Below are positions 1,829-22,798 of a stretch of 22,798 nucleotides of DNA, piece by piece. Position 1 is the first letter of the stretch. Every line of letters starts with the position of its first letter. Origin of the DNA: Oopsacas minuta (taxonomy: Eukaryota; Animalia; Porifera); contig JAKMXF010000103.1 of the NCBI GenBank assembly GCA_024704765.1, forward strand, positions 1-22,798. The letters are read 5' to 3'. The position numbers were made by a program, and so were the translations under genes. The notes beneath the pieces were generated by a model. The model did not search any database and was not told the DNA's origin. It saw only the letters and a program-made list of their open reading frames with translations.

Positions 1829-2074
1829 GTAGGAATAGGGATTGTAGGAACAGTCAAGTAAACTGGTCTCATTACCATAACAGCCAAAGTCGAGTAGATT
1901 AGTTAGCATCAGGGTCATAATAGGCAATAGTACTTTCGATGACTGAAGAATAGCCTAATGCCTGACATGTGACTGTAGCATCTGCATCATCCCAGCCATC
2001 GTCACAGATATAGCCCCATGCACTGTTGTAATAAATATCAACTATAGCCCTACACTTGTCACAAAGCCATTAAG
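1829..2074 (-). pseudogene. Frameshifted scavenger receptor cysteine-rich (SRCR) domain remnant
   Basis: The minus strand reads LNGFVTSVG / IVDIYYNSAWGYICDDGWDDADATVTCQALGYSSVIESTIAYYDPDAN / NLLDFGCYGNETSLLDCSYNPYSY, with frame changes near 2046-2047 and 1901. These are classic SRCR motifs (WG.ICDD.W, VTC..LG, C.G.E.SL..C). The C-terminal cysteines are missing. Confidence 0.8.
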
Positions 2075-2210
2075 TCAATTATGATATAATACATACTTAG
2101 TGAGAAACAAAACATAATATAAAAAGTTTGAGAATTATACATACAAAATTTATAATTATTACAAATGCCATTTACAATTCTAATTTGAACAAATATTTTC
2201 CAGTAATTAA

Positions 2211-2362
2211 TTATTTTTTATCCAAAGGTTCAAAGATTGGGTTTTGTATAAAATCATACTTTTCGCTTCCAGTCACTACTAATGATTTTTCATTTTCAGC
2301 ATTATCTTGTGCTATTGGGAAAGACTCCATCGTTTCATTCTCTATTAGGTTGATTTCTGAAC
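2211..2362 (-). CDS. aGPCR exon 32: terminal cytoplasmic tail (GSEINLIENE...YDFIQNPIFEPLDKK*)
   Basis: A TTTTGTAG acceptor at 2363 and a phase-1 GTTAGT donor at 2932 join in frame. 49 open codons follow, then TAA at 2213-2211. Confidence 0.7.
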
Positions 2363-5300
2363 CTACAAAAGACAGTTCAAATAATTAAATACTAATAGAA
2401 CAGTGGAGTTTCCATTAATTTTTGATGGCTATGACATTTAAGAGAAATTGACTCTAGTAAAACATATTTCTGAAAGTAGAAAATTATCATCGAATTGAAT
2501 GCCAAAAATTCGATACTACTTATTTGAAGAATTATTCTGATAACATAACTAATACTTTTATCTCAAAGTGCTTTATCAAAAATCCTGCAGATTTTACGCA
2601 GTGATGTTACTTTTTAAACTCATGAATTGACAGTTATTTGACACACTGCATAATAGGGTCACCTCCTATCTGGTTATTCGACTAAATTACCGGATAATTT
2701 TACACTATTTATGTTGTATTTAATTTCTCCGGGTTAATATGGTTGCTTCGGGCCAATTGATCTGATTAACAGATGGCTCTATTAATTAATTAAGCAGAGT
2801 ATACTGTAATTGATAATTCAGTAAATGTGTCATGAACATACTCTCATCAGGTAGAGTATTTTGCTTTACAAAAATATAGTAATTATAATCTTGATTTATC
2901 AATAAAAAAATCGGCGAACGAAATTAACTAACCATGATATAATGTATTTTTTTGCATTTCACTGTCTCCAGATCTTGATTTCTTCTTAATCTTGTATTTT
3001 AAAGTGCCACTCTTCACTCTGCTTGAAATAGTATTAGATGTAGTTTGAGTGTTTCTTTTCCTTTTAAATATCGCTCTAACTTCCGCATTTCCTAACGTAA
3101 CCACAATAAAGAATATAAGGCCCATACCTCCATTCAATAGGATGAATATCCATTCTACAACTGTGCTCCGTATGAATATGTTGAATATTAGAATCACCCA
3201 AGGTAATCCTAAGATTGGTGTTAGAATTAAACTGTATATTAATACATTCTTTATTAACCCAAGCCTTTGATCTTCTCCTGCCTTAGCTCTAGCTGTTACA
3301 ATCCGTACAACAGCGAGAATGAGTAGTATAAGATTGATGAGGAGAAGGATAATTATAGGGGAAATAAACGCCCATATAACTCCATAGTTAATATTGAGGA
3401 AACAGTGCTCACTGGGGTCTACGTAGTTTTCTCTTGTTACAGCAATTGTTATTATTGGAATAACCAAAGGGAACGTCCATCCGAACACGATGAGATACGG
3501 GTAGATCTTCCTCGTGGTCATTACAGCTGTTTCAAAAGAAATATTAGTAAATAATGGTATCACAATCAACAAAATTGTATTATATTTCTCATACAGTCAA
3601 CTCCCGTTATATCGAAGCTCAAGAGAGCACGATATTTCCTTTGATACTGAGTTCGATATTAACCGATGATATTTATGTTACTTTGAAGATTTGTGACTAT
3701 ATTTCTACAAGTTAGATTTAGAATAGAGCGGATAGCTCGATGTAACGGGAGTGACTGTATTTAATCTCAAATTTTTCTTCAAGATTGTTTAGATGACCCA
3801 GAAAGAATTACATTAGAAATGGAACAATAAATCCGATTGGGTCTGTTCACTCTTTTGAACAAAAATTTGCTGTAACAGGGACTAAGGAGCAATTATTATA
3901 TAATTATATATAACATGGAAGCGTACAATGTATCTTCCCATATACTATTATATATTCTACGTAATCAACTCACCTATAACCAGTTTGAAAATTATGAAAA
4001 TTCCATTACACAGAGTCCAAGTGAACACTGCTAACCAAATATAGTGCAATAAGAATCCAATGATTAAACAAACAAAGTCATTATGAGTCCCACTCTCTAT
4101 TCCGAGCAGGAACAGTCCTGTAGCTAGCAGCATTGACAGACAGTAGTTGAAATAGATTATGTTTGCTTCCACTTTGAAAAATGGCTTTCCAGCTATGAAG
4201 AATAGAATCAAAGAGATTAGCAAGAAGATGAATGAAATGCTGACAAGCAGGTAGCTGAATATGGAGATGACCAACTCTTCAGTTTCACTAGTTGGAATAT
4301 CGTGGGGTGTAACAAATACCGCGAAACTAGTGAAGTGTGAAGTACTACAGATTGTTAAATTCTCATCGGGAACAGAGGTTGTTTGAATACCATCACTATT
4401 CCATATTGATCCATTCAATGCAACACATATGGATTCTAAATTAGCAGTAAACTTTGTGTAGAATGCTATCTCTGCCTAAAGATAAATAGAATTATAAATT
4501 CACGAACAGTTAACCAAATTTTCTCGTATAAGATTGAGATACAATTTTTCAATAACGAATACACAGTATACAAAGTTTGGTAATAAACTTACATCTTCAG
4601 ATAACTCGATTCTCCCGTATACATTACTTTCCTCTTGAAGAGTTTCAATTATAAGAATGTCGCTAGCCTGTGAAGACATACCTTCTCCAGGGTCTACTGG
4701 TTGATTACTATCTCTATTTATTAGGGTTGTTGCAACCTAAAATGTAGAAAAAGATATTCAAACTAGACATAATTTAACTACGAAAATTAAGTTGTTTTCA
4801 AGAAATAAATCAATATTATTAAATCTCAATTGTTGTTTGTCTGTTTGTTTGTCCTTTGAATAGCTCGAGGCGCAATGTGCCGAGTTCATCGCGAAGCGAC
4901 GAGCCAAAGGCTCGTTTCGTTAATATTCCTATTGGTCAGACCAGTACACAAAATTTGCAATATTTCCATATATGGAAATTCAGTTACAAGGAGCTGAACT
5001 CATTTAAGATTATAATATTTCTGAATCATTTACCGCTATATTTCCATCAACTGCGAGTTGTTGTGCCACGGACTGAGGAATTGAGAATTGAGTGTTGAAT
5101 TCTGTACTTGAGTTGACAATACCAGGAAAAACATAACTAGACTGTGATTCTGTCACACTTCTGGCCTGAACAACTATAGTCACAGTCCTTGACTCAATAA
5201 CTTGTATACCTGAATCAAGATCTCTCAGAATATTTTGACTGATATTTTGGATTGAATTGATTGCAATCAGTTCAGGAGTATTAATGGATGCAACTGAATT

Positions 5301-8300
5301 GGACATTCCTTCAGGCTAGATAGTAACCATGCATAATTATTGCATTGAACATATGGGCGTAAGATTATTATATAATTATTTTAGAATTCTGATAATCACA
5401 TTTCAAATTCAATTTTGCATATTTACCTATCGTTTTGCCTGACAAATTTTGCAAAAATAGGCAGAATAAACCGATTTTCGAATGCATACACTGCACTATA
5501 CTAGAATGATTAGATGGATTAGATGGATTAGATGGATTATTTAGGATTAGAAAGTGAAAATTTAGTTAGGTAAATAGCATATGGTGGAATGTACGTAACT
5601 CACATCGATCATAGTAGTATTATTGCTGCTAGAATTAACCTCCAGACTCCTATCTATAATCCCCTCAGCTGCCTCCAATAGCGAAATGACAGTCTCCTCA
5701 TCTAGGGACATACCATTACTCAGTGATTTGTTAACTAGTAAGGCATACGTGCTAGCTACTTGTTCAAGCTGCTCTTCATCTTCAGCTGCACCTGAGAGCA
5801 ATGCTACAGCAGCAGAAGCAACTTGACTTTGGTCATTAGTAATTTCAGTTTGATTCATCAACTGAGTTGCAACGTCATCAATATCCATTACAGTAATACT
5901 CAAATTGAACCTAACAGAACGTACATCTCTACCAGCTGTATTCTCAGCAATGCAATAGAATATTCTATCATCTGATAATAGCTGATTTGTAACGGTTAAT
6001 ATGTGTGATGAAATATTCTCGAATTTAGAATTCGTCCAGTATATAGTTGTCAGTGATAGTTTTCCTTTTGACTCACAAATGAGAATATGTTCAAAGGTAA
6101 TATTGAATTCCACATCCAATGTTATGTTTTCTGAAGGCAGAATTATTGTTGGAAATACTAAAAGGAGAAAACTGAATCATTCTTTCCGATCTTGGAGGTT
6201 CGAAGTATATTCTAATTAATATTTTAACATTGTCAGTTCACTTACTTGCTGATGTTATTTCTGCTACTGGTAAACTCAGAAGTGAAAAATCTGCACTCGT
6301 TTGCTACAAAAGTATAAATATATTAATTGTTATTTGCAAAATGCCTGTTATAGATACAAGTAGATATATATGTCAGCTGACTGAACTGAAAAGGATACTA
6401 ATTATGGAAAAAGTGATTATTGCCACTCTCATGTTTGATGATAATCTTACCCAAATCGACCAAAATTGACAATATTCGATACTCACCATATCTTCATCTA
6501 AGAATAGAATATAATAGCTATAGGACACTGTTGTTCCAGGATTTAACGGTAGATTGGTATAGGTTATTCCATTGTAAGTTGTTTCTTCTCTTGATCCAAT
6601 GATAAATGAGAAATAGTCTCCTGGTTGATTGAATAACGAAGAACCAAGAGCTGCTTGAATACGAACTCTAGTAGATTTATCACCAGACCCGTATATAAAA
6701 CCATTAGTATCAGTGGTATTCGTATTGATAGCAGAAAATCTTTCTGTTGTAGTATATCCAGTAAATATTTCTGGATTGTTGTAGTCCGTGATAATATAGA
6801 TGACACTAGCATAACAAATATAATTATTCCAATACATATGGCCAGTATTCGAAAATCGTTATTTTGTGGTTTTCTGATTAGAGAAAGAATGAATCACCAG
6901 TGAGTGGAGAATACATATGAAGTTAACAATAATTGACGTGCTGTATTTCTAATTACAAATATTTTGTCAGGAAAGTTCATTAATATACAAAAATTGATTG
7001 CTATTATAAATTACGTACATAAAAGGGAAATATGGATTGATTGTATTGAATTACCAAAAAGGAAAATAACAAATGAAATGAAAATTCTTTATTAATGAAA
7101 TTCTGATTCACTATGTTTATATACGAATATTATACACGGATAGAACACGGATAGAACACGGATGGAACTCGGATGGAACTCGGATGGTAGCCATTCGGGA
7201 AACAAAAATAAGTAAGTATTAACCGAGTGCACGTCTTATCCGTGTTCTAGTGTATATGAGAACATATTTAATCGTTATAACATACCCTATGTTGGCTGTT
7301 ACAAATAGACTTTGTGTTGGCACAAATATTTCTACTGTGTATAGAGCTGGTTGAGTAGACTGAGTAGGAGTTGGTTCAACAGGTACTTCACTTGGAACTA
7401 TATTGCAATACAAGTATGGAATAATAATTATCATCAAGGAAAGTGAATATAACATACGGTACGTGAATTTCTCTTAATGAATATTCAATAAATAGAGAAT
7501 ACAACTTACCTAGTGGATATGTTGTATTAAAGATTGGTTGTGATCTGATACTAATTCCTTGTTGGGTGACTACATTTATACTGATTGAATATTCTGTATT
7601 TGGTAATAGGTTAGATATAATCTGTTCATACGGTCCTGAATTTCCATCAGCAAAGTATTGAATTTGTTGCTCTGTATCTCCAGGAATTTGGTAGAATATG
7701 TTAAAACTTTGTAGAGCTCCATTCAAAGTAGTGAAATCATTCTCAAATGAAACTAGTAGTGACATCTGAAGCGTTCCTATTGGTGCAGTTATTGGGATCA
7801 CTGTAATAACGATGGGAGGACCGGTAGGAGCTAGAATAGAGAATATAATTATAATACTTGTATACTATATTAGAATATACGTATAATAAATATGATACAC
7901 AAATATCTTGATAAGTAGTGAAATTCATTCGTTTAGACTGAACCAAGTATTTTATGACAAACCATTTGCAGCTAGAGTTGGAGGTATAATGGTAACGAAA
8001 GGTGTTCGCCCAAGAGCAGTCTGAATAGATACATTAACCTCGTACTCATAATTAGGGAGAAGATCATCTAGAGTAATACTATTATCGTCTATAGGGAATG
8101 TCATAAAGAGTTCAGGAGTCATATTTATAATCACACGATCGGATTGTCTTCTTCTTCTCATATCAGTTGGAAATACGCTGTCTTCAAATAGGAATCCTTG
8201 GTAAATACAGATATATTGAGTAGCTGGGGAATTTAGTACTGATACTGGAACAAAAGGGATAATTAGAGTTATACTTGTTGAAGTGGTTTGAATCATTACA

Positions 8301-11300
8301 TCATCAGGTGTAAATACTGGTACAGTAGGAGGAGAAACTAAAGAAAGGTTAACATAATGTAGTAAGTATAGTTAGATATGTTTACCCTGTATTTAATGAC
8401 AATAAATGCATTGGAGTATAGCTCTGACCTTGGCTGAACCAGAAGATCCGATTGTTTCAATGATCACCGTGTCAGTTCATTTTAGCGCGAATCCAACTTT
8501 CCACCCATGTACCCCCTGTTGTCGTTCGTGGAACACAAATTGCACTCATGTTGGACACAGTATAGTTTAGCCTTTGCACTAAACAACCAACCTGCTTCTG
8601 TCATGATATATCTGGTCTCACTCGAAGCACCTAAGCCAGCTCCATTTCCAACTCTTACACTAACTACATACATCGTTCCTTCGTCTACATTATCGAAACA
8701 TACCATAATGATAGTAGATTGGACACTATAGCAACTAGCATCATTTATATTACATGTTCTGTTACTGGGACCTGATATTTGAATACTCGATAAGTTTACA
8801 AAATATCTGTCAATTAAACCATTTTGATCAATTGCTGGTGGGTTGGTAAATCGTACACATATTTGTGTAGGATTATTACTTGATACAGTAAGAATATTTG
8901 GAGCAGCAGACACTAAAAGAATAAGAAAACACAATCAATTCTATGTATGTAAGTTTGTTTACTGTTTTGAATATGAAATAATGCATCCTTAGCATGCCAA
9001 TGTCACATTTGCTGACAAAGCCCTCTCATTGTGGCGTAAGATTTAAAAGGGCCTGAGTATGAGTAGTCTTAACATATTCAACAAACCTGCTTCATTAGTT
9101 AACTGCACTACTCCATCAGTATATTCACTTGTTCCTGCTACATTAATAGCTCTAACACCAATAGTATAATTATTATACTCTTGTAATCCAGTCAGATCAA
9201 CAGAAATTTGTGTTTCAGCTGGATAGTTTGAATTTGGTGCATTTACCATTACAAACTGAGTATTAGTATCAAATATCTCTCCTGTATAGCTGATATTATA
9301 CATGAGATCAGGTCCATTCTGATCTATTGCAGGAGGAGGATTAAATGTTACTCTAATAGATGTAGCACTCAATGTTACTGTCATTACGTTTTGAGGTGTT
9401 TCACTGGGAGCTATTTGGAATATAAACAAATAGTAGATAAAATTTTGCAAAACTCTGTTTTTCAAAGGGAAAAAGAATATATTATTGAAATTAAGAGCGA
9501 TTCAGAGAACCATCTCTTATACGAATATAGTCAGTAAATTTTACAGTGTATTATCACTATCCTGCACCCTTTTACATACAAGATTATTTCTTATACAAAG
9601 CAAAAGGACATTATTAGCAAATTGATTCACATCTCACCTGCGATATCTGCCAACTGCACTACTTCATCTGTGTATTCACTTGTTCCTGCTACATTAATAG
9701 CTCTAACACTAATAGTATAATTGTTATATTCTTGTAGTCCAGTTAGATTAACAGAAATTTGTGTAACAGCTGGATAGTTTGAATTTGGTGCATTTACCAT
9801 TACAAACTGAGGCTCAGTATCAAACATCTCTCCTGTATAGCTGATATTATACATCAGATCAGGTCCATTCTGATCTATTGCAGGAGGAGGATTAAATGTT
9901 ACTCTAATAGAATTAGCACTCAATGTTTCTGTCATTACGTTTTGAGGTGTTTCACTGGGAGCTATGGAGAATACAATTATAATTATATAGTTTATACTAT
10001 ACAGCTCCATGTGTATATATCACTGTTGAATTAGTGTATTAATTATACTGAATTAGATCAATTAATCTTACCTGCGATATCAGTTAACTGTACAATTCCA
10101 TTTGTGTATTCAGTTGTTCCTTCTACATTAATAGCTCTAACACTAATAGTATAATTGGTATATTCTTGTAATCCATTTAGATTAACAGAAATTTGTGTAT
10201 CAGCTGGATAGTTTGAATTTGGTGCATTTACCATTACAAACTGAGGATCAGTATCAAATATCTCTCCTGTATATCTGATATTATACATCAGATCAGGTCC
10301 ATTCTGATCTATTACAGGAGGAGGATTAAATGTTACTCTAATAGATGTAGCACTCAATGTTTCTGTCATTACGTTTTGAGGTGTTTCACTGGGAGCTATG
10401 AAAGAATGCATATAAATACTATTATATAGATAATGAACTCAGGACAGCGGTTACGGCCAGCCGGAACATGATCATTTTTGTAATGTGCATTCCTATACTA
10501 TTAGTAAAGTATCTGTGCTACGATACTAATAGGAAGCATATTAATAATATGGATTTCAAAGTGTTCATTATTTTCATCAAATTGATAAATTATACCGAAA
10601 GAGAACGATCAATCTTACCTGCGATATTAGTTAACTGTACAACTCCAAGTGAAAATTCACTCATTCCTTCATCATTAATAGCTCTAACACTGATAGAATA
10701 ATTGGTATATTCCTGTAATCCAGTTAGATTAACAGATATTGGTGCAGTAGCTGGATACGATATGGGATCTGAGAAAGATATATTATCAAACTGATTAGAA
10801 GTGTCGAATATCTCTCCTATGTATCTGATATTATACATAGTAATAGGTCCATTCTGATCTATCTCAGGAGGAGGATAAAACATTACTCCAACAGAATTAG
10901 CACTCAATGCTACTGTCATTACATTCTGAGCTGTATCACTGGGAGCTATAAATTAGAAATATTGAATAAATACAGATTAACTATTATGATAAATATTCTG
11001 TATTATAACTTACCAGCTGGGTCAGTTCTCAAATAAACAGGATCACTGAAAGGACTGAGTCCAACTAAATTTCTAACAGCGAAACTAACAGAATAGTTAA
11101 CAAATTCTTCTAGTGGTGATAAAATAGTAAATTTGAAGGTGGTATCATTTGTATTAGTAATAGGAACAGTGATTATCTGGCTTGTTTCTATATCTATTCC
11201 TTGTAATCTAATCTCAACTGACTCAAGTGCACCATTGTGTTCATCTATATCTGGTATCCTCCAAGTACTGTTTAATGCTGTGGAGTTTATTACAGTGATA

Positions 11301-14300
11301 GATATGTTAACTGGAGGGGAACTTGGAGCTAGAGAAAGGTATAGTATGAAGATATGAAAATATTATTAATTATGCGGGAAATTCCAAAAAAATCTAACTC
11401 CAAAACTACTCAAGTTAAAAGGGCTATTTTGGTGGAAGAATTGAATTCGAAAAGGAACAATCATTAATTGTTGTATTATTCATTTTCCTATACGATTAGG
11501 ATAGTTTGTATTTGTTTTAACTATTATCATAATCCCTCGCTAATCCAAACAGCAGTGTTCCTATTGTAAAATACATCGTCCGGGTTAGTGAATTTGTTCA
11601 GATATGCGAAATGCATTGATACAATACTATAGGATCTAGGAGTACATTTTTTCGAGAGTTGTACAAACGATTAAAAGTCTGCTAACACGTGTAATATATG
11701 TATTATAATATATTATGGATTGTTTGATTATTTTTAATAATTGAGATATTCTCAAACTTGTTGAGTATACTTGAGTATTCGTATTTAGAAATTTTGAAAA
11801 GAATTAAGCATTTTTGGTATTTCTCAATATTCAATCAAAGCTAAGAATTGATACTAACTGTATAACCTAGTCGTTTACAGGAATATGATTCTATGAATTT
11901 GATGCTAACCTGCAGCTTGAGTTGTGGCTCGTAAAGGGTCAGTGAATGGACCATCACCAACACTCGTGCTTGCTCGTAATATAAATATATAGCTTGTATC
12001 TTCATCTAACCCAGTCACATTGATACTGAGATTAGTTGGAGGAACTGTTATATTTCGAAGATCTGTATCTCTTTCAATACCAGAATATTCAATAAAGAAA
12101 TTCACTAATATTCCATTCTGATCAATAGCAGGAGGGCCAATCCATGACAGAAGTATAGCACGACCACTCTGAGCAGTAAAGTTCTGTGGTGGAGCACTTG
12201 GAGCTAGAATACGACACAATTGAAACTAATGAAATTTTCCTCAAAATATATCAAATCTTACTCACCAGCTTCATTTGTTCTTGCAAATACATCATCACTC
12301 TCTTCTCCATCTCCAATCATATTAACTGCTATAACAGTTATAGTATAGTTATTAAACTCTTGTAAGGTTGTTAAGTTCTCACATAGCATGCCAGTTAGAG
12401 GGTATACTACTGGTGATACAGTTATAGACACATTCTGAGGAGATATCTCAAATGGATTCCCTGAGTAGATTATGGTGAAAGAAGTTATTGGGCCATTTTG
12501 GTTGACAGCTGGTGGAGGACTGAAGCATACTTGTATTGCTGTAGAATTCAATGCCACAGCTGTTACGTTCTGAGGAGGTTCATCAGGAACTATATAATAG
12601 AGTTAATGATATTTCTAGTTTTGATGCTGTTGGATATATACATATGGTATGTGACTCAGCACAACTAATATTAGTTTAATGATATAACACTGTATTGAAT
12701 AGATTTATCATAATAGTGTTTGGTGATATTTCTGTGTCCCAAAATTATTATAATAAAGTACTTACAGAGATACTGTATACTACGAGACTGATGTAAGTTA
12801 CTAAGTAATACAACAACCAAAACATAACAAACCTGCTGCTGCTGTCCTAACTGTTATCATAGTAGCGGTTCCTTCACCAGCTCCATTATTAGCTCTTATT
12901 AACACGGTATAGTTGTCGAACTCTTCTAAATTATATATACACACAATACTTGATTCAGTTAGTGGATAAGGTGTGTTTACGTCTACAGTTATATTTACTT
13001 CAGCAGCATTGAATAACTCTCCTTGATATGTCACAGTATAATTACTGATTGGTCCATTCTGAGTGATGCTTGTTGGAGGATCGAATGTAACACAGAAAGA
13101 AGTAGAATTGATATTAACTTCCATTAAATTGAGAGGTGCAGCAGGTACTAATAGGGGGGAATGGATGAAAATTACAATATAAGAACATTCACTAAATTTC
13201 TCAAAGAATCCGCATTACCTGCTTGCAGAGTTCGTGCTGTAACAGGTGTACTGGAGTCACTAGATCCAGCTGAATTAACAGCCATAGCACTGACAGTATA
13301 ATTGTTATACTCTTCTAATCCCGTTAGGTTAGAAACAGTACATATCATGGATGCATATGAAAAAGAGTATATTAAAACTTCCATCTGAGTAGAAGTATCA
13401 AATGGATCTCCAGTGTATGAGACTGCATAGTTTGTGATTAAACCGTTTTGGTCGATAGGGGTAGGTGGACATACTGTAACCTCAATTACTTGAGAACTAA
13501 TTGTACGTAGGGTTACATTCGGTGCAGCAGCAGGAGCTAAGTAGAGAGAAATATACAAATATAACATTGATTATGGTGAGTTAGTTTTCACACTTTTAGG
13601 CTGTTAATGTATTTTATTTGTCACTTTATGAATACAAAGTTGGGCGGAGCCAAAATCAGCCAGGTGCGACCTCTAATATGGGAAAACAAAAAAGGATTCA
13701 GTTAGTACGTACATTTCTCCAAAACGGATTATCTATTCTTGAACAAATTGTATAAGATGATTCTTAGGAAAATACATCGATTAGTACATAGATTTTGTGC
13801 AATGAGTACGTCTTATCCGAGTTCTACTGTATATGTTATTTGTCAGAGAAATAATTTATGTAAAGCGGGGAATTCAAATGTAGATATTATCAATTACCTG
13901 CTTCAAGAGTTTCTATAACAATAAAGTTACTAACAGGACTTGATCCAGCAGAATTAATCAATACTACTGTTATAGTATAGTTATTGTATTCTTCTAAACC
14001 TGTTATATTGCTACATATTGATCCAGTCATTGGATAATCAGAAGATGTTGTAAGAATATTACCAGTTCTTGGATCTGTATCAAATGGAGATCCAATAAGA
14101 GTGATATCGAATGAAGTTATTAATCCATTCTGTGTATTTCCAGTAGTAAAATCAAAACAGACAGTAATTGTAGTAGCATCAATGGGTGAACTGGAAACAT
14201 TCTGAGGAGCAACAACAGGTGCTATATAGAATAATATTAAGTAAATCTTTAGAAAGTGCCTAGACTGGGGGTTTAACTTAACAAATCGAATATACTCACG

Positions 14301-17300
14301 ACAAAAGACTCGATGCATTTATTATGAGAAGTTTCCACATCATTCATGATTTAGAACACTTGTGGGTATTTTGACTTATTACAAAGTCTCTTTGAATATT
14401 TTTCTCTACAAAATAATATCTGATTTGACTAACCTGCTGCTTCTGTCATAACTGTTATCATTGCAGCAGCTCCTTCACCAGCTCCATTATTAGCTCTTAT
14501 TAACACAGTATAGTTGTTATACTCTTCTAAATTATATATACACACACTACTTGATTCAGTTAGTGGATAAGTTGTGTCTACGTCTACAGTTCTATTTACT
14601 ACAGTCATATTGAATAACTCTCCTTGATATGTCACAGTGTAATCACTGATTGGTCCATTCTGAGTGATGCTTGTAGGAGGATCGAATGTAACACAGAAAG
14701 AAGTAGAATTGATATTACCTTCCATTAAGTTGAGAGGTGCAACCGATACTATTTTGGGAAGAATAAGATGGTAATATACAAATATTTGAGAAACATTTAG
14801 AACAGTTCCTAAGGGTAATGACTATCCCACATTTTACAGAAACAATGCTAGTCCTATATCGAGGAAGCTATGAGCCATCCCACTTTTCATGGGCTTCCGA
14901 TGCAGCTATGGTCATTATAGAGGTTTGTCTTATCGGAATGGATGATATGCGACGTCAGTATATTTATCCAAAAATTTTATCATCAATATCCCCGAATGCA
15001 AAGCACTTTAGATACATACCTGCTTGGAGAGTTTCTGATTGAGTAGAATCACTAACAGGACTTGATCCAGCAGAATTAATCAATACTACTGTTATAGTAT
15101 AGTTATTGTATTCTTCTAAACCTGTTATATTGCTACATATTGATCCTGTCATTGGATAATCAAAAGATGTTGTAAGAATATTATCAGTTCTTGGAACTAT
15201 ATCAAATGGAGATCCAACAAGAGTGACATTGAATGAAGTTATTAATCCATTCTGTGTATTTCCAGCAGGAAAATCAAAACAAACATTAATTGAAGTAGCA
15301 CTGATGGGTGAACTGGTAACATTCTGAGGAGCAACAACAGGTGCTAGAATAAATAAATGGGAAACGATTGAAAGGATATATTTGAAATTTTCATACTGAA
15401 GATTAGGAATAAATGGAAGCATGAAATATGCATACCAAGGTGTATACGGTATGCAGACTTTTCAGATGAATACAAAAAACTGAATTTCAAATTTCGTTTT
15501 GCTACTTGTAAAACAGCAAAATTATCACACGTTAATCCTTGAAAATTTTCATTCATGGACAATTCGCTAATGAATACTTAATATTTCGCCTCAAATCACT
15601 ACTTTATGCATCGCAGCACTATTCAGTAACCTACCTGCTTCATTAGTCATTACTACTATACTCTGACTGATAGGTCCTGGTCCTTGAGAATTAATAGCAA
15701 ATACTGTGATATTATAGTTATTGTATTCTTCTAAGTTAGTTAAATTGAAACACACATTACTCTCCAATGGATAAGAAGGAGGTGATATAACCATTTCATT
15801 AGTGATAGATTCTGTTTGGTATGGAGATCCAAAAGATGTGATAGTGAATGAAGTTATTATTCCATTCTGATTAATACCAGGAGGAGGATCGAAACAGACA
15901 TTAATTGAAGTAGGAGTTATGTTTATACCAGCAATGTTTTGAGGAGCTTCATTAGGAACTAGTAGGGGGAAAATTATGAATAATGGTTATATACAGATAG
16001 ATAGATTAAAGATACTGTAAATTATACTAGAATGATTAAATAGCTTAGAGAATTTCTCTGAATACAAACTTGCTTCTGATGTCATAACTGTAATCATAGC
16101 AGCAGCTCCTTCACCAGCTCCATTATTAGCACTTATTAACACAGTATAGTTGTTATACTCTTCCAAATTAGATATACACACAATACTTGATTCAGTTAGT
16201 GGATAAGTTGTGTTGACGTCTACAGTTATATTTACTACAGTCATATTGAATAACTCTCCTTGATATGTCACAGAGTAATCACTGATTGGTCCATTCTGAG
16301 TGATGCTTGCAGGAGGATCGAATGTGACACAGAAAGAAGTAGAATCAATATTAGCTTTCATTAAGTTGAGAGGTGCAGCAGGTACTAGTAGAATATAATA
16401 TATTTTATTACATAGGGATACCAACTCTCACGGATTCGTGGTTCTAGCGGTAAATCTCATTTATTTTTGCTTTCTTAATTCATATGTTATATAATTGGGA
16501 TAGCTCACCTGCTTCCAATGTTTCATTCCTTACTTCAGCTATCATGGAGTCACTCACCCCTAATTCAGGAATAGTCACCATTAATGATATCGTATAGTTA
16601 ACATACTCTTGTAAGCCCGTTATGTCTACATCTTGTGGTGTACAAAGTCCTGTTTGTTCGGTAATATTGATATTTAGAGTACGAACAGTTGTATCAAGCT
16701 CTACACCTCTGTATACAAATTCATATCGTATTGTTACATCAGCTCCACAGTATTCAAGTGCTCTGAAAGATACTCTTATCGCTGTTGAGTTTATTGTATT
16801 AGCTACCAAATCCTCATCACCTACATATGTTATTAATGTATTTAATAATTCAAATATTTTACTACACAAATTCAATTCTCTAATTAATCTATTATTATAA
16901 CGCTATGTTACTGCTTGCATGGATTTAAATCTTTCGAATTTCAGCTCATTTCCCAAAATGTGAAAATTTTATGACTGAACTAGTAAAAATGCTATTAAGA
17001 TAATAATCGCCAATAATTATCATTACCTATTGCTATGGTATCAACAGCTCTCGGACCGAAGTTTGATTCGAAAATAGAAGCTGACACTCTGATGATAAAC
17101 ACATCATCTGTTGATAGAGTAAGTTGTTGAAAAGTAGAATAATTTGTTAATGTTTGTATATTGATGAGATTTCTGAGAGTACGATAAGTGAGTTGATATT
17201 CCAGACCTTGTGGAAATACTTCAATTGGATATATTCCTGCTGATTGTGTCCATGTAAAGTTGTATACACTACCAGAATCAATGACAGAACTCAAGTTCTG

Positions 17301-19632
17301 TGGCACTCCAGCTATAGAATATATTATACATCAAAGTTGTTTAGTTTACAACCTAGTATGAACCATGAGTTAACTTCTGCGGGAGAGAATTTCCCTAACC
17401 GAAGTAACGTTCGAACGGTCGCTAATTTAGCAAACATAAACTTACGAAGAGGAGGATTAGTTGCTATCAGTAAGAATTCTAAAGTAACATCAGAAGTCAA
17501 TGTTCCATCAGTTAACGTTAGTGTAACAGTTAGTGTTGTATTAAGAGTTTGATTAAGGATGGACGTTGTAATCGTTATTATCCCGTCTATGTCCACTGCA
17601 AACAAATCGTCTGTGGAAGACACCGAATAAGTAACTACAGCATCTTCTTCACCATCACTCAAAGCTGGTACACACCAAACAGTATTATTAGCAGGAGTAT
17701 CAACGGGTAGATCTATGTTGTATGTAGATTGAGAGAGAGTAGGCGCTGTGTCTTCAATATTGTTGATATAGATAATTAAGGTACCCAGTGTAGTAAGGGG
17801 ATCCGAAGTGGTTACTATTGAGAATGATAGCTCAGTCGTGGTTTCATAGTCAAGTGATGAATTTAGATAGAGTTCGCCAGTGCTGTTATCGATTCTGATA
17901 GCTGTAGGTGTCGGAGATAGATCTATTGTAGTACCACTTACAGTTATTGTACCGATAAGTGTGTCAACAGCGGAATTTTCATCTATTGTGAATACGTATC
18001 TGTCTTGTTCGAGAATATTTGCTATTTGTGTAGGATAAACATAAGTATCATTCATAATAATAGTTTAAGGGGAACTTACATGAATTTTCTGTAATAGTTA
18101 GAACAAACGTAGTAGTTGAAGTTAAACTAGTAGATCCTCCGTCATAAGCTTCTATACCTACACTATAGTCACCTAGAGGTAGAGGATCAGTGTTCTCTAA
18201 AACACCAGCTGAAGTCAAACTGAAATTAGCTGCATTTGTGCTGTTACTATCTATCTTAAACATTACCAAACCGTTTGCATTAGAATCTGCATCTGTTGAA
18301 TTAAACCTAACAATTGTGTTATTAACAGACAGTTCTGTGGTATTAATCTCTATAGTGAGGGAATCCGGGCTAGGTGGAGTGGGTATGTTATCATTCAAGT
18401 CAATCAAACAAATATTTATCTCAGCAGCTTCCAAACTTGAAGTATCAGTTATGACAGTTGTGTCTCTACGTTGATCAACATTTTCGTAATCAAGTATGTT
18501 TACTTGTAGATAAACAGGACCCGGAATCGCAACTTGAAAGTTTGGATTTGAAGAGACGGGTGATGTGTTAGTAGTAACGTATACAGGTCCAATAGTATTT
18601 ATAGAGTCCTCACTGATGGCAAAATAGTATTGATTTGGGGTAAACGCAAGATCTATTGAGAAACAGTTTGGTAAAAATACAGCAGATTAGCCAACGTGCA
18701 AACTCTAACAGTAAGCTCGATTAGTTATTAGAATTCTCATTTGATGGTAGAGATTTATATTGAGCAAACATTAATTAATTTTGAGGGTATATAGCCTAGT
18801 TAAATGGTTAGCGAATTCATTTTGTTGCTATAATAATCTGGTTTAGTTGTTGTATTGAATTATTTATTACTTATTACAGTGGATGCCGGTTATGAGAATA
18901 CTTCATATAAACGCATTTGGATGTAGGAGCCATATTATAGAAAAAGATTCTCAGATATACTGTATACCGGTAATAAGAACCAATTTTACTACTATTCTAA
19001 GAGTGTTCTTATAACCGTCATGATATTATATTGGGTATATGGCAACCGTTTTCCAGTTTGATGTTTTATATCCTATAAAAAATCCATGGAGTATAATACA
19101 TGATTCCGTGAATCAAGTAAAAACCCTGTAAAAGTCTATTAAGAATAAATATTAGTCAACAAATTTTGAGAAGAGGCTATCAGACAGTAATATAGTTTCT
19201 AACATTGAAATTCTACAAATTGCAAACCGAGTTGTTCATACCATTACCATAGCTATTATTACTCAACACAAAAGGCTGGTTAAATTAAGTACAATGGAAA
19301 CTGCCTATTAGTAATTCGTAGCAAAATGAGCCTTTTAACAACTTTTTTTCATGGACATGGAGTGGTTTTGTTTGGTAATTACTGTGCATAATATCAAAAT
19401 TCGCTTATTAGCAAGGAAACTCTTGCAAAATACGATTTGCTAATAGGCGGTTTCCATTATACACCCTAATATGAGTAATAAGCACATACCTTGTGAATGG
19501 TTGAATATACAACTAGCTAATAGCACCTATAATTGAAAACAACAGTAAATTATATATTATTGGAAGAATAGAGATGAGACTTACAATCAGTGTTATTGAG
19601 ATCCGCGTGAGTTTAAGGAAGTTAAATATCAT
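2211..19632 (-). CDS. Giant adhesion-class GPCR (4x cadherin, 19x FN3, RPTP-like module, Ig, GAIN/GPS, 7TM); 32 coding exons, ~3,343 aa
   Basis: Manual exon model, transcript order: 19585-19632, 19490-19526, 18080-18652, 17446-18021, 17027-17311, 16509-16820, 16070-16384, 15635-15958, 15020-15343, 14434-14748, 13898-14221, 13219-13536, 12833-13147, 12266-12589, 11910-12203, 11014-11328, 10619-10945, 10072-10395, 9638-9961, 9087-9410, 8592-8912, 7963-8337, 7510-7830, 7286-7397, 6487-6805, 6246-6303, 5604-6157, 5034-5315, 4593-4736, 3974-4475, 2933-3526, 2211-2362. All 31 introns are GT-AG and all phases match, giving 10,032 nt in one open frame from ATG to TAA. No transcript evidence is available. 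Confidence 0.9.
2933..4280 (-). CDS. aGPCR exons 30-31: secretin/adhesion-type 7TM domain
   Basis: Seven hydrophobic segments with family motifs: TM3 C..I..LLHY..LA.F.W, TM4 GW..P, ECL2 Cys, TM5 F..P...L.IN, TM6 P.LGL.W, TM7 LN...G..FF. The 447-nt phase-1 intron is at 3527-3973. Confidence 0.92.
3594..3757. mobile_element. pogo/Tigger-like MITE in aGPCR intron 30
   Basis: TA-cagtcaactcccgttatatcga ... tcgatgtaacgggagtgactg-TA: TIRs differ by one indel and one mismatch. Confidence 0.85.
4310..5315 (-). CDS. aGPCR exons 28-30 (part): GAIN domain with GPS motif and tethered (Stachel) peptide
   Basis: ICVALNGSIWNSDGIQ...TICSTSHF/TSFAVFV matches the C-x-W-x-G-x-C-x-H(L/F)/T(S)-x-FAVL GPS consensus. 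His-Phe-Thr lies at 4337-4329. Confidence 0.9.
4831..4979. mobile_element. Possible Helentron-associated/DINE-1-like non-autonomous element remnant
   Basis: A (TGTT/TGTC)n tract at 4831-4853, a GC-rich hairpin acgagcc-aaa-ggctcgt at 4899-4915, and a perfect 18-bp palindrome at 4962-4979. Ends and target site are not defined. Confidence 0.3.
5508..5539. repeat. 9-bp minisatellite (GATTAGATG) x3.5 in intron 27
   Basis: Read directly from the sequence. Confidence 0.85.
5604..6157 (-). CDS. aGPCR exon 27: Ig-like (I-set type) domain followed by the helical start of the GAIN domain
   Basis: Ig motifs LICESKG, IYW and D..FYCIAENTAG, followed by amphipathic helices (DVATQLMNQ...LLEAAEGIIDR). Confidence 0.85.
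6246..7397 (-). CDS. aGPCR exons 24-26: Pro/Thr linker plus an RPTP-like membrane-proximal beta module
   Basis: The spliced frame reads VPSEVPVEPTPTQSTQP...VTANIG|VIYIITD...FIIGSREETTYNGITYTNLPLNPGTTVSYSYY...EDM|QTSADFSLLSLPVAEITSA. The F.IG...Y.G..Y.N.PL.P motif resembles the juxtamembrane module of receptor tyrosine phosphatase ectodomains (recognised by eye). Confidence 0.65.
7135..7252. mobile_element. Short TA-flanked MITE with an internal 11-bp tandem array
   Basis: TA-cacggatagaacacggata ... tatccgtgttctagtg-TA. About five 11-bp units (acacggataga grading to actcggatgga) lie at 7134-7187. Confidence 0.6.
7510..17311 (-). CDS. aGPCR exons 5-23: 19 tandem fibronectin type III repeats, one per phase-1/phase-1 exon
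   Basis: Most exons start (A/V)P..(A/P)P.N and carry QNG.I..Y and the FN3 tyrosine corner L(E/Q)E(Y/F).NY.(I/V).V.A.N..G.G. Exon lengths are 285-375 nt, all multiples of 3. Exon 16 (11014-11328, APSSPPVNIS...LEEFVNYSVSFAVRNLVG) is absent from the ORF track but translates cleanly. Confidence 0.92.
13680..13829. mobile_element. Partial MITE related to the 7135-7252 element (right end only)
   Basis: gagtacgtcttatccgagttctactg-TAtatg (13804-13835) aligns with gagtgcacgtcttatccgtgttctagtg-TAtatg (7225-7258). Both are preceded by ggga(a)aacaaaaa. The left TIR was not found. Confidence 0.55.
17446..18652 (-). CDS. aGPCR exons 3-4: four cadherin-like repeats, two per exon
   Basis: Cadherin motifs: ISED...LDYE...DLNDNIP; DADSNANG...AYDGG; IDEN...LDYE...NIEDTAP; a degenerate fourth repeat (SDGEED...LTDG). 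The exons are 573 and 576 nt, separated by a 58-nt intron. Confidence 0.85.
18877..19027. mobile_element. Degenerate pogo/Tigger-like MITE in aGPCR intron 2
   Basis: TA-cagtggatgccggttatgagaata ... tgttcttataaccgtcat. The inner part of the TIR matches at ~15/18 and the right terminus is decayed. Confidence 0.5.
19292..19459. mobile_element. pogo/Tigger-like MITE in aGPCR intron 2
   Basis: TA-caatggaaactgcctattagtaa ... ttgctaataggcggtttccatta-TA: TIRs match at 20/23. An internal cgcttattagcaa sub-repeat is present. Confidence 0.75.
19490..19632 (-). CDS. aGPCR exons 1-2: signal peptide (MIFNFLKLTRISITLI|VLLASCIFNHSQ)
   Basis: ATG at 19632. A 58-nt GTAAGT...TATAG phase-0 intron is followed by a 37-nt exon ending at a GTATGT phase-1 donor, which joins in frame to exon 3 (D-LAFTPNQYYF). 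The peptide has a basic N-region and a hydrophobic core. Confidence 0.7.
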
Positions 19633-21272
19633 TATAATATTTTAATGAAATTGGACGCATTAATTGTATTTAAAGGAAAATCAGGTTACATTCCTAATTG
19701 TAATAGGACATACTAACCTGTATTAGATTTCATAGAAAATGGATACTGTTACATTATTATGGGAAGTGTAATCCTAAAAATGATTAGAGATTTGAATTTG
19801 CGATTCAGCAGTTATTATATCCGATCCTTTTAGTTGTATTTTTCATAAATAACTTAACATTTCGTTGAGGATCACCAGCTACCAGTTAGGAAATGTAAGT
19901 TTACTTTTAGGTAATTCCAGCTAAATGTAGGAAAGAGTTTGTCTAACGAGCGATGACCGTTCCGAACGAACACCTTTGCTAGCATTAGTTTAAAGGTGAC
20001 CTTTTCGGATTTTTGAAAAAGAAATACGCTGTACTTTTTGTGGTTTTATTCTAAGTTGTTTATTACGCGAATAACGTATAATATGTATACGTTATCTATT
20101 TGAACGTATTATACGTCTAGGTTAACCTCGAAATATCAGATCTTGACATTGTTAGACTTGTTTAACTCACATAATTATCAAGTATTATATAATTTAGTCA
20201 ATTGTAAGGAGATTTCTCATTAATAATTCAAGAACTACTGTTTTGATACAAAATAATTATTGCATAAATCAGCCTAGTAGAAATTACGTCACCAAAAATT
20301 GAGATTGAACATATAATACAGATTATTCAATTTAGGTTTTATTCAACCACAAAAACCACGTTTCTAAGTGAAATCTTCATCTCTGTGAAAAGGTGACCAA
20401 ATGTTCTATCTCATGCTAAATGTATTTGGAAATAGTGACACTAGATTGAGGAATCGACAAGAGATACAAACTTGAAATTCGGCATGTGTATAGATTGTGA
20501 ATAATCTAGCTTGATATTCTATTATCTAAGCGATTTCTCATTAACTCTCTGAGTTAGGTGTCATAATGTATTGACTTATCAGATAAGGGAACGGCTTGTC
20601 ATACAATAAACCAGTGATTCTCAATGTGTGAGCCTCAGAAAGTGGTTTAGTGTCAATAGCATAAAACAAATTTGTCAAAATACATTCAGAAGCTCAGCTT
20701 CGAGTTCTTTGTATATGAAAGTAGTAAAAGTCAAGATGAATAATTACGTAACTTCTTAACACAAATATTTACAGATAAATTGTCTAGCTTTGAAGACTAG
20801 AATTATCACAAAAAGATTATGTATACCCAATTACTCACTAACTAGAGTAGTCGTTGAAGCAAATCAATATCATTAATTAAGGAATTGATGCAAAGGTGTG
20901 AAAATTTAACATTAGAAATATTCATAAACAGGCTCAAATCTCCAAATAAATAAATGTAATAATCAGCTGGTAGATTCCGCAGGATTGCAAAGACGTATGA
21001 TAGACGTTAGAACGTCCTACATTATCCATTCCCTCAAGGAATCTCTTTATAGGAGCTGTGTATGAATGGATTAGAATAGAATAACAATAATAAGTATGAA
21101 TAATTAACAATAGCTATAACAGAAGATAGAATGAAAATGTTTTGTACATACGTACGTAAATCTAATGAAATAATAAATAGAGTTCTAGGATATCTCTATG
21201 TCTTAGCCAAGTATTGAAGGGAAGAATTGTATAAAAAGGAAAAGGCAAGAATTTGAATAAAAGCCCCAATAA

Positions 21273-22499
21273 CTAGAATATGAGAAAACGATTGTTGTAA
21301 CCTACAACCACAATTCTTCCTGTTGAATTGAGGGTAACTCCAGTAGGTCGTGGAATTGATTGAGTGAGTTTATGAAGTAATTGTCCTGTATTATCAAATA
21401 TAATAACAATATTACTGTTGTGATTCGAAATAATGAAATTACCAGCTCCATCTATCAGGAATGAACTCGGATTATTCAAATGTTTGTTAATAGAATCACA
21501 TACAGTGTTCTGTACTTGATTAAAATTATAGTTGAAAGAGTAGAGAAAGGAATTTTGGCCAGACAATACAAATATAGTATCTTTAGTCAGTTGTATGTCT
21601 TCTGGATATTTGACTATACCAATTCCAAACTGAGATTTGTAAGAATAATCTTGTGAGAATATTTGTATTCTGTTGTTAGAGTAATCACATACATAAATAT
21701 CTCCATTATCTACATTGATAGCAATACCATAAGGTCTGTTGAATTGTCCTTCTCCACTACCTGGAGTACCTATTTGTTTGATAAAATTTCCTTTCAAATC
21801 AAATATCAACAAACAACCTGCTTCATACTGACTCACAAATACTCTCTCTTTATCAATAGTAATACAGAGAGGAGACTTCATCTTATCAGTACCAAATAGA
21901 AACAAGAATTTACCATCTTTACTGAATACCTGTACTCTGTTGTTACATTGATCTGCTACATAGATGTTATCTGTTCTGTAATCAACAGCAACTCCCCATG
22001 GATTCCTGAATTGTCCTTCACCACTACCTCCAGTACCTACACTCACTACTGGTTTCACTTTACCTTTATAATCTACAACTGGTAGACATGAGTAACTTGA
22101 ATTAACAACACTAATCTTACCAAATCCATTAATCATATCTAATAGTGTATTATCAAATTCAAATGAAATATGTTTGGGTTTCCATTCAGATTCTATTTCT
22201 TTCTGTTTCTGTTCTAGGATTTTCATCATTTCAGTTTGAGTTCCTTTCATTGTGGTTGATTCGATATTTTCTCCAATAAACTTCTGAGTTTTTGTAATTT
22301 CGTATATACATTGTTTATGTTTGTCATTTTCCTGTTTGTAATTTTTGTGAATTTCTTCCAATTCCCTCAAAAGTTGGTTCTTCCTCTTTTCCAAATAATT
22401 TGTTATTTCACAAAATTTGTCATCAATTTGACGTTTTATTCGACTTATTTGAAGTTCAAAGCTATCTTCTACTCCAGGAGAAGTTGGAGCAGTAGCCAT
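21273..22499 (-). CDS. Coiled-coil + six-bladed NHL-repeat protein (TRIM-NHL-like, no RING or B-box in this ORF), 408 aa
   Basis: Uninterrupted ORF. The N-terminal third is a charged heptad-rich helix. Six NHL blades follow (FRNPWGVAVD, MKSPLCITID, FNRPYGIAIN, VKYPEDIQLT, LNNPSSFLID, IPRPTGVTLN), with G.GEGQF and D..NNR(V/I)Q(V/I)F signatures. Confidence 0.92.
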   Translation of the reverse strand: MATAPTSPGVEDSFELQISRIKRQIDDKFCEITNYLEKRKNQLLRELEEIHKNYKQENDKHKQCIYEITKTQKFIGENIESTTMKGTQTEMMKILEQKQKEIESEWKPKHISFEFDNTLLDMINGFGKISVVNSSYSCLPVVDYKGKVKPVVSVGTGGSGEGQFRNPWGVAVDYRTDNIYVADQCNNRVQVFSKDGKFLFLFGTDKMKSPLCITIDKERVFVSQYEAGCLLIFDLKGNFIKQIGTPGSGEGQFNRPYGIAINVDNGDIYVCDYSNNRIQIFSQDYSYKSQFGIGIVKYPEDIQLTKDTIFVLSGQNSFLYSFNYNFNQVQNTVCDSINKHLNNPSSFLIDGAGNFIISNHNSNIVIIFDNTGQLLHKLTQSIPRPTGVTLNSTGRIVVVGYNNRFLIF

Positions 22500-22686
22500 T
22501 CTATAAATAATATAAAATTATAATATCTGATAGTATGATAAGTTAACAGGAATTATATTGTTACTATATTAGTGTTGCTGGATTTCCCCGGAAATAGGAT
22601 ACGAGTCATACGACGATATAGCAAGAAGACATCACTAACACTAATCAATTTATACTTCACTCCCAAAGAATACGAATATTAAATGG

Positions 22687-22798
<112 letters not shown>

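Follow-up and report, generated by a model that had tools for sequence, protein, structure and literature searches.

CELSR/Flamingo receptors, which belong to the adhesion class of G-protein-coupled receptors (aGPCRs), carry 8-9 cadherin units, and receptor protein tyrosine phosphatases (RPTPs) of the LAR family bear Ig domains at the tip and a cleavage site in the juxtamembrane stalk; lefftyrin-type cadherins of sponges and choanoflagellates were reportedly described by Nichols and colleagues in 2012. A review of the aGPCRs names cadherin repeats for subfamily C (CELSR/Flamingo) only, in a layout of cadherin, EGF-LamG, HormR and GAIN domains, and surveys of sponge and choanoflagellate GPCRs list aGPCRs with FN3, Ig, EGF, HRM and SRCR domains and describe no cadherin-FN3 form. 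Cadherins of the lefftyrin type that bear phosphatase domains have been named and, as cited, have EGF and LamG domains beside the membrane (PMC12221298). The gene described here, a cadherin-tipped aGPCR, lies on the minus strand of contig JAKMXF010000103.1, in assembly GCA_024704765.1 of the hexactinellid Oopsacas minuta, and the whole of this contig (22,798 bp, AT-rich, ~32% GC) is the window that was analysed. The genome paper of this species does not treat aGPCRs and does not discuss the gene.

The evidence makes it probable that one expressed O. minuta gene encodes a giant cadherin-FN3-X-Ig-GAIN-7TM (seven-transmembrane) aGPCR, a mosaic assembled independently of CELSR/Flamingo. The protein consists of four cadherin units, 19 FN3 domains, a module that we call X, an Ig domain, a GAIN/GPS region whose GAIN fold is predicted, and a family-2 7TM domain. 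An initial annotation of this DNA had proposed a single aGPCR gene with a cadherin tip, FN3 rod, Ig, GAIN/GPS and 7TM, and this is borne out by the deposited annotation, a single reading frame, Pfam and profile matches, and RNA joints. It had recognised the architecture in no named family, and likewise no described family was found in the literature searched, where neither this architecture nor the arm that it shares with other receptors is described. The novelty is lessened in that the single-gene model was already in GenBank as an unnamed protein.

Nearly all long open reading frames (ORFs) of the window lie on the minus strand, where GenBank places a single gene from an annotated start at 19632 to a stop codon at 2211-2213, with an unnamed product of 3,327 aa that has Cadherin, fn3 and 7tm_2 matches. 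Our independent model was derived from ORFs delimited by stops and from scored GT..AG pairs. Between the first cadherin exon (18652-18080) and the stop, both included, it counts 30 exons, with at least one further exon upstream, in a single frame that is intact throughout a chain of ~10 kb of coding sequence. It gives ~3,315 aa plus a signal peptide, or 3,350 aa with candidate exon 1. Of the 30 introns in the model, 29 have GT-AG borders and lengths of 58-581 bp; the first intron (877 bp) rests on candidate exon 1, whose putative donor (G|GTGCTA, phase 1, at 19527/19526) was set by eye and suits the acceptor at 18652. A donor directly after codon 16 (GTAAGT) was rejected, its phase 0 being mismatched to the only good acceptor. 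The three models, of 3,327 aa (GenBank), 3,343 aa (initial annotation) and 3,350 aa, differ at exon 1 and possibly at a 58-nt exon. The giant size first proposed is kept (3,315-3,350 aa, with ~2,966 residues before the first transmembrane segment, TM1, by hydropathy, against ~2,980), whereas the 32 exons become 30 plus at least one. All 19 FN3 exons are of phase 1-1, with one domain apiece.

Four sequencing runs contain the sequence, three of them DNA-like and one RNA-like (X4), and the read evidence covers 2150-8149. X4 has CT..AC joints exactly at nine predicted introns between 7963 and 2362, and matching loose ends at a tenth (5034/4736); the ten joints run gap-free from FN3 #18 to the last exon and include the junctions FN3#19-X-Ig. 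Depth is low (9.4) at the joint 6487/6303, which three more contigs span by 9-13 letters. Across the covered region the X4 depth of exons reaches hundreds to thousands, against 4-28 in introns. A possible break of the transcript between the FN3 array and the 7TM domain, considered in the initial annotation, is not seen in the X4 joints. The cadherin exons are contained in X4 as fully as in the DNA-like runs (0.46 versus 0.42-0.49), which weakly supports their expression.

The tip of the protein comprises three firm cadherin units and a weaker one in tandem. The second unit (EC2) scores 34 bits against Pfam Cadherin, and the third (EC3) 37 bits against Cadherin_FAT4_N and 27-30 bits against Cadherin. 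For EC1 and EC4, profiles were built from five and four homologous loci and compared with PDB sequences: that of EC1 matches CELSR1 (8.9e-9), FAT4 (3e-7) and PCDH (range 9e-9 to 1e-6), and that of EC4 matches cadherins alone, though weakly (best cadherin-23, at 3e-4). Calcium-linker motifs are present (LDYE twice, DLNDN, DAD, DEN), the one between units 3 and 4 being degenerate, and the mature start AFTPNQY is kept in five loci. In the rod, 16 of the 19 FN3 exons (#3-#17 and #19) exceed the 25-bit cut-off of Pfam fn3; the match is weak in #2 and #18, and #1, which has none, is recognised by its pattern only. Several of these exons are recent duplicates of one another, with identities of 82-87% for #3/#6/#9, 82% for #5/#7 and 85-89% for #14-#16.

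Between rod and Ig domain lies module X, for which nothing credible was found in Pfam (E<=10), in the ESM Atlas or with a three-sequence profile against PDB. Its homologues (64% and 46% identity) share an invariant core, VIYII..D..NP and SYYILF, and an AF2 model of a single exon, made without alignment, reaches a pLDDT of 38. The Ig domain is recognised by profile matches to titin, Robo and MuSK Ig domains (~1e-6, PDB sequences), and a low-confidence AF2 model of its exon (pLDDT 43, again a single exon without alignment) has a beta sandwich followed by four helices, the putative start of GAIN. The middle of GAIN would then be formed by exons 5315-5034 and 4736-4593, whose fold is predicted from position only; they are 53% identical to a homologue (L005) and have no Pfam match of their own.

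The GPS scores 26.5 bits (Pfam cut-off 22.5) directly before TM1, and in an alignment with ADGRL3 the HL|T and TNFAVLM of the latter fall on HF|T and TSFAVFV, residue for residue. From its sequence the site H-F|T looks cleavage-competent, and a hydrophobic tethered-agonist sequence comes next. The two 7TM exons, the first of which also holds the GPS, score 34.1 and 62.7 bits against 7tm_2 (cut-off 20.6), with seven hydrophobic segments after the GPS. Among solved structures the exon for TM4-7 is closest to ADGRD1 (4e-21), ADGRE1, ADGRL2/3 and ADGRE5, and the PDB matches overall are to ADGRD1/E/L/F/G. The motif PILGLPW in TM6 and the hydrophobic residues of the Stachel are conserved, and the cytoplasmic tail contains an NP[IL]F motif that recurs in the L005 homologue (19850-19999) and in the related protein P0007 and that may serve to recruit a PTB or endocytic adaptor.

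Homologues were found by single-exon searches of ENA assemblies, which probably represent other hexactinellids. In assembly ERZ25069837, contig ctg27922 carries on one strand two cadherin exons with FN3, 11 kb of transposon-rich DNA, and an FN3 x9-Ig-GAIN-7TM array; PTP exons were not found there by tblastn with the transmembrane and PTP exons of the phosphatase gene described below (L010). Compared with this copy, the cadherin, Ig/GAIN and 7TM exons are under purifying selection, their ratios of non-synonymous to synonymous divergence (dN/dS) lying at 0.12-0.27, and at 0.12-0.18 when the 7TM exons are taken by themselves. Synonymous divergence is about equal for cadherin and GPS exons (1.05-1.24), which together with the dN/dS values fits orthology of the whole gene.

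A further relative links the arm to another class of receptor. On contig ctg49578 of ERZ25071281 (L010), cadherin exons and ~35 FN3 are collinear with residues 194-2421 of the O. minuta protein at 40-75% identity. The enlarged FN3 #18 is retained with its RRRRQ, and past FN3 #19, whose counterpart is the membrane-proximal domain, a phase-1 transmembrane exon and two Y_phosphatase domains follow; the gene codes for a receptor tyrosine phosphatase. Judged by these sequences, the cadherin-tipped aGPCR is an old paralogue of a cadherin-tipped RPTP and not a one-off. As the arm has its paralogue in the ectodomain of an RPTP and not in CELSR, the independent assembly of a cadherin-GPCR argued in the initial annotation gains support. 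The same annotation had labelled part of the ectodomain "RPTP-like"; this suits the cadherin-FN3 arm, an RPTP relative, but not the module before the Ig domain, X, which matches no family and for which no counterpart was found in the RPTP homologue. A block FN3#18 (RRRRQ)-#19-X is seen instead on contig ctg28024 of ERZ25069837 (L013), followed by an FN3-like domain, one transmembrane segment and a Tyr-motif tail; both this gene and the RPTP homologue keep the RRRRQS motif.

The signalling end points elsewhere. Tandem Lectin_C-fn3-Ig-7tm_2 genes (ERZ20067936, ptg000219l) share 48-54% identity with the TM4-7 exon, and FN3-Ig-7TM members in three assemblies 48-62%; a protein search with this exon returned fragments and paralogues only (best 62%), plus a 90% chimera, P0003. 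By its phase-1 FN3 stalk, its related 7TM and the single Ig that precedes GAIN, the gene falls in the (FN3)n-Ig-GAIN-7TM group, from which it differs by lacking the lectin tip. A search from a 2,360-aa aGPCR sharing TM6 words returned only its own EGF-type family. All cassettes being in phase 1, an exchange of exons suggests itself as the mechanism, and by comparison with these relatives the receptor is a mosaic of phase-1 exon cassettes, whichever way the exchange went.

Several observations weigh against this interpretation and should be kept in mind. Positions 8150-19632 lie outside the read coverage, and the 5' two thirds of the gene rest on annotation, phase consistency and collinear homologues. 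The summed RNA contig depth over 6150-8149 (FN3 #18-#19-X) is ~3-10 times that of 2150-6149 (Ig-GAIN-7TM); the step near 6150 could come from cross-mapping of a paralogue sharing FN3#18-#19-X or from a shorter isoform. On ctg27922 the cadherin part is separated from the remainder by the 11 kb of transposon-rich DNA, and a single gene there is presumed. Within the predicted GAIN region the GPS is the sole part that scores in Pfam, the AF2 models having pLDDT of 38 and 43, and this GPS has F, not L, at -1 and is without the second Cys of C-x-C.

The first two of these points, together with the fact that the cadherin-FN3 arm of relatives ends otherwise, in PTP domains or a Tyr-motif tail, could be explained if two adjacent genes had been merged in both annotations, one for a receptor or secreted protein of the cadherin-FN3 type and the other for an FN3-Ig-GAIN-7TM aGPCR. 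We regard this as unlikely, as the window has no terminal exon, be it transmembrane, PTP or another, and the chain is free of exons with a stop inside (window ORFs and tblastn), the FN3 exons are all of phase 1-1 with short GT-AG introns between them, and no gap interrupts the splice joints between FN3 #18 and the final exon; the deposited annotation is of one gene, and the same order from cadherin to 7TM is seen in the related assembly.

An artefact of assembly, in which near-identical FN3 repeats joined an RPTP-type 5' part to an aGPCR 3' part, is a very improbable source of the architecture. The FN3 exons are indeed repetitive (up to 89% identical), the contig is short (22.8 kb), a 90% copy of the 5' end lies on another contig of the assembly, and the closest full-length relative of the arm is an RPTP. 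Yet in a tree of the cadherin exons O. minuta and the aGPCR-linked copy on ctg27922 stand together, apart (support 99/98) from two RPTP haplotypes and a kinase-adjacent copy from ERZ25069837 that is syntenic with the RPTP locus. Against the aGPCR-linked copy, cadherin and GPS exons have equal dS, the junctions specific to the mosaic (FN3#19-X-Ig) are confirmed by RNA, and the DNA-like runs span 2150-8149 without breaks at the borders of the exon arrays, in short contigs only.

It is just as hard to see in the gene a divergent CELSR/Flamingo orthologue that has lost EGF, LamG and HRM and gained FN3. Such descent would account for N-terminal cadherin repeats on GAIN and 7TM, and the best PDB match of the EC1 profile is a CELSR1 cadherin domain; this match is generic, however, as FAT4, PCDH1 and CDH23 score alike. 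EGF and Laminin-G, whose absence had been noted in the initial annotation, were found in none of the exons scanned, and neither was HRM (Pfam E<=0.01, and E<=10 for unassigned exons). The cadherin units number four, not 8-9, and what lies collinear with the arm is the ectodomain of an RPTP. The 7TM is nearest to that of lectin-tipped FN3-Ig aGPCRs and, among structures, to ADGRD1/E/L, in a comparison set without a CELSR 7TM. Least likely of all is a transcribed protein that serves for adhesion or as a spacer, with its GPCR part in decay and its signalling lost, which the non-canonical GPS (HF|T, one C-x-C Cys gone) and the degenerate partial 7TM copy elsewhere in the genome (P0003, without TM6) might suggest, but which is at odds with the intact frame over ~10 kb, the dN/dS of 0.12-0.18 on the 7TM exons and the conserved Stachel hydrophobics and PILGLPW.

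Under the single-gene reading, the receptor combines a cadherin-FN3 arm, whose paralogue ends in a transmembrane segment and two phosphatase domains, with an FN3#18-#19-X block that is also present on a single-pass Tyr-motif receptor and an FN3-Ig-GAIN-7TM core that it has in common with the lectin-tipped aGPCRs. A function as mechanosensor and G-protein coupler is suggested by analogy with aGPCR and cadherin biology. The cadherin tip would bind a partner in a calcium-dependent manner, on another membrane or in the matrix, and the FN3 rod would hold it ~90-100 nm out (~4.5 nm per cadherin, ~3.5 nm per FN3). The mechanosensor role and the length of 80-100 nm proposed in the initial annotation are predictions from domain counts. 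A pull on the arm would part the N-terminal fragment at the GPS (HF|T), and the freed Stachel would turn on G-protein signalling. The conserved RRRR in FN3 #18 probably permits furin to cleave at a second place, in the manner of the LAR-type phosphatases, and the conserved NPIF of the tail suggests binding of an adaptor.

The gene would represent a second, independent route by which cadherins were coupled to a GAIN-7TM core, and in an early-branching animal. The same arm material on three signalling chassis in related genomes is a clear natural example of phase-1 exon cassette exchange, and the sharing of the arm allows one to ask whether the arm can be separated in function from the output, for example with one ligand giving different signals. 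Tentatively, and with a reading that we hold to be improbable, one may go further and suggest that glass sponges have wired one cadherin-FN3 arm, in paralogues, to G protein, to tyrosine dephosphorylation or to a Tyr-motif tail as a modular receptor system; in that case a single act of binding could give opposite signals, in the manner of paired receptors.

The positions of the exons and of the neighbouring features are collected in Table 1.

Table 1. Features of the window, listed from the start of the aGPCR gene to its stop, followed by the splice joints and the neighbours.
Feature	Position	Strand	Remarks
Candidate exon 1 (ATG + hydrophobic signal peptide)	19527..19632	-	ORF starts MIFNFLKLTR, then a long hydrophobic run
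Cadherin EC1-EC2 exon	18080..18652	-	LDYE; DLNDN linker at 18387-18401
Cadherin EC3-EC4 exon	17446..18021	-	Pfam and profile
FN3 #1-#17 exons	8592..17311	-	one domain per exon, phase 1-1
FN3 #1-#6	17311-17027, 16820-16509, 16384-16070, 15958-15635, 15343-15020, 14748-14434	-	
FN3 #7-#12	14221-13898, 13536-13219, 13147-12833, 12589-12266, 12203-11910, 11328-11014	-	
FN3 #13-#17	10945-10619, 10395-10072, 9961-9638, 9410-9087, 8912-8592	-	
FN3 #18, enlarged	7963..8337	-	Pfam fn3 18.5 bits (weak); polybasic furin-like RRRR at 8147-8158; joint to next exon RNA-confirmed
FN3 #19	7510..7830	-	Pfam fn3 29 bits; both flanking joints RNA-confirmed
Module X, ~160 aa	6246..7397	-	exons 7397-7286, 6805-6487, 6303-6246
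Ig domain + start of helical GAIN part	5604..6157	-	joints RNA-confirmed
Mid-GAIN exons, by position	4593..5315	-	5315-5034, 4736-4593; in frame, RNA joints
GPS + Stachel + TM1-TM3 exon	3974..4475	-	HF|T 4329-4337; TSFAVFV 4311-4331
TM4-TM7 + start of cytoplasmic tail	2933..3526	-	Pfam 7tm_2 62.7 bits
Last exon, tail + stop	2211..2362	-	NPIF at 2232-2243; RNA joint 2933/2362
X4 joints	7963/7830, 7510/7397, 7286/6805, 6487/6303, 6246/6157, 5604/5315, 4593/4475, 3974/3526, 2933/2362		
NHL-repeat propeller gene, 408 aa	21276-22499	-	intronless
SRCR-domain exon	1902-2069	-	Pfam 42 bits
Trinucleotide AT-rich microsatellite	22653-22798		read as I or L runs

The NHL gene lies directly upstream of the aGPCR gene, and the SRCR-domain exon, downstream of its stop, is part of a different gene, which continues past the end of the contig. 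The microsatellite stands at the opposite contig end and is probably the reason why the assembly stops there. Within the gene, the depth of all runs spikes at ~4750-4949 (up to 337,000) and 3550-3749 (up to 5,600), where two introns contain high-copy repeats, and many read contigs break off into loose sequence at 4808-4916 and at 3591-3592.

Another O. minuta contig, JAKMXF010000123.1 (L001), matches the window at 18265-21822 and 3101-4186. On it the NHL gene, the DNA between the genes and the beginning of the cadherin gene recur as a 90-92% copy, which stops inside the first cadherin exon, and its upstream part has an isolated 91% copy of the 7TM region without TM6; the same NHL family is present on both contigs, and the GenBank protein KAI6657053.1 is a fusion of this 7TM fragment with the NHL gene. 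Between the two copies, EC1 residues 13-85 (window 18400-18615, L001 19300-19520) are only 42% identical (dS 0.75, dN 0.44), against identities of 91-92% in the flanking non-coding DNA and of 93%, at dS 0, where EC2 begins. The EC1 tip is, on this comparison, a divergent cassette, either allelic or acquired by conversion from a paralogue. Within the improbable modular-receptor reading given above, such divergence between otherwise 91%-identical copies would fit polymorphic self or partner recognition, for example in the control of tissue fusion in a syncytial animal.

Variation is also seen among the related loci. Two contigs of ERZ25071281 (L008 and L011) are 97% identical over 11 kb, from a kinase gene through the cadherin exons, and past these their FN3 arrays are composed differently, so that the stalk varies between haplotypes or recent duplicates. 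A second giant receptor phosphatase gene (15313-20276, 3,295 aa called) adjoins the cadherin-FN3 RPTP on ctg49578; its Ig array lies in a single uninterrupted ORF of >1,650 codons, unlike the FN3 genes with one domain per exon.

Set against the described receptors, the gene shares with CELSR/Flamingo (ADGRC) the N-terminal cadherin repeats on a GAIN/GPS and a family-2 7TM. CELSR has EGF-LamG and HormR domains in addition, whereas here four cadherins, 19 FN3, X and Ig precede GAIN, on an arm paralogous to that of an RPTP; the EGF-LamG and HormR signature of ADGRC was not detected, and the CELSR1 chain 8vy2_A was matched through its cadherin region only. Among solved structures, the 7TM itself is best compared with ADGRD1, ADGRL3 and ADGRE, which supply the best matches of its two exons (4e-21 and 1.5e-13) and whose GPS/Stachel, in ADGRL3, can be aligned with it, but the identity is only ~30-35%, the ectodomains are unrelated, and orthology is not implied.

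Among the phosphatases, the lefftyrin-type RPTPs are comparable through the cadherin and FN3 ectodomain, collinear over ~2,200 residues at 40-75% identity with the receptor of ERZ25071281 that has a transmembrane segment and tandem PTP domains. In the present gene Ig-GAIN-7TM takes the place of the latter, and the EGF and LamG of lefftyrins are in neither gene. A single transmembrane segment followed by PTP was not found in the window, where the corresponding exons of the L010 homologue gave no tblastn match and no Y_phosphatase ORF is present. LAR-family (type IIa) RPTPs resemble it in their FN3 stalk and a polybasic furin-type site near the membrane end; here the site lies in a loop of an enlarged FN3, cleavage is predicted, the tip is of cadherins and the output is that of a GPCR. 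The FN3 stalk-Ig-GAIN-7TM chassis is also that of the glass-sponge lectin-(FN3)n-Ig-GAIN-7TM aGPCRs (ERZ20067936), which are built from the same phase-1 FN3 cassettes but end in a C-type lectin tip, where the O. minuta receptor carries four cadherins and an extra FN3#18-#19-X before its Ig domain.

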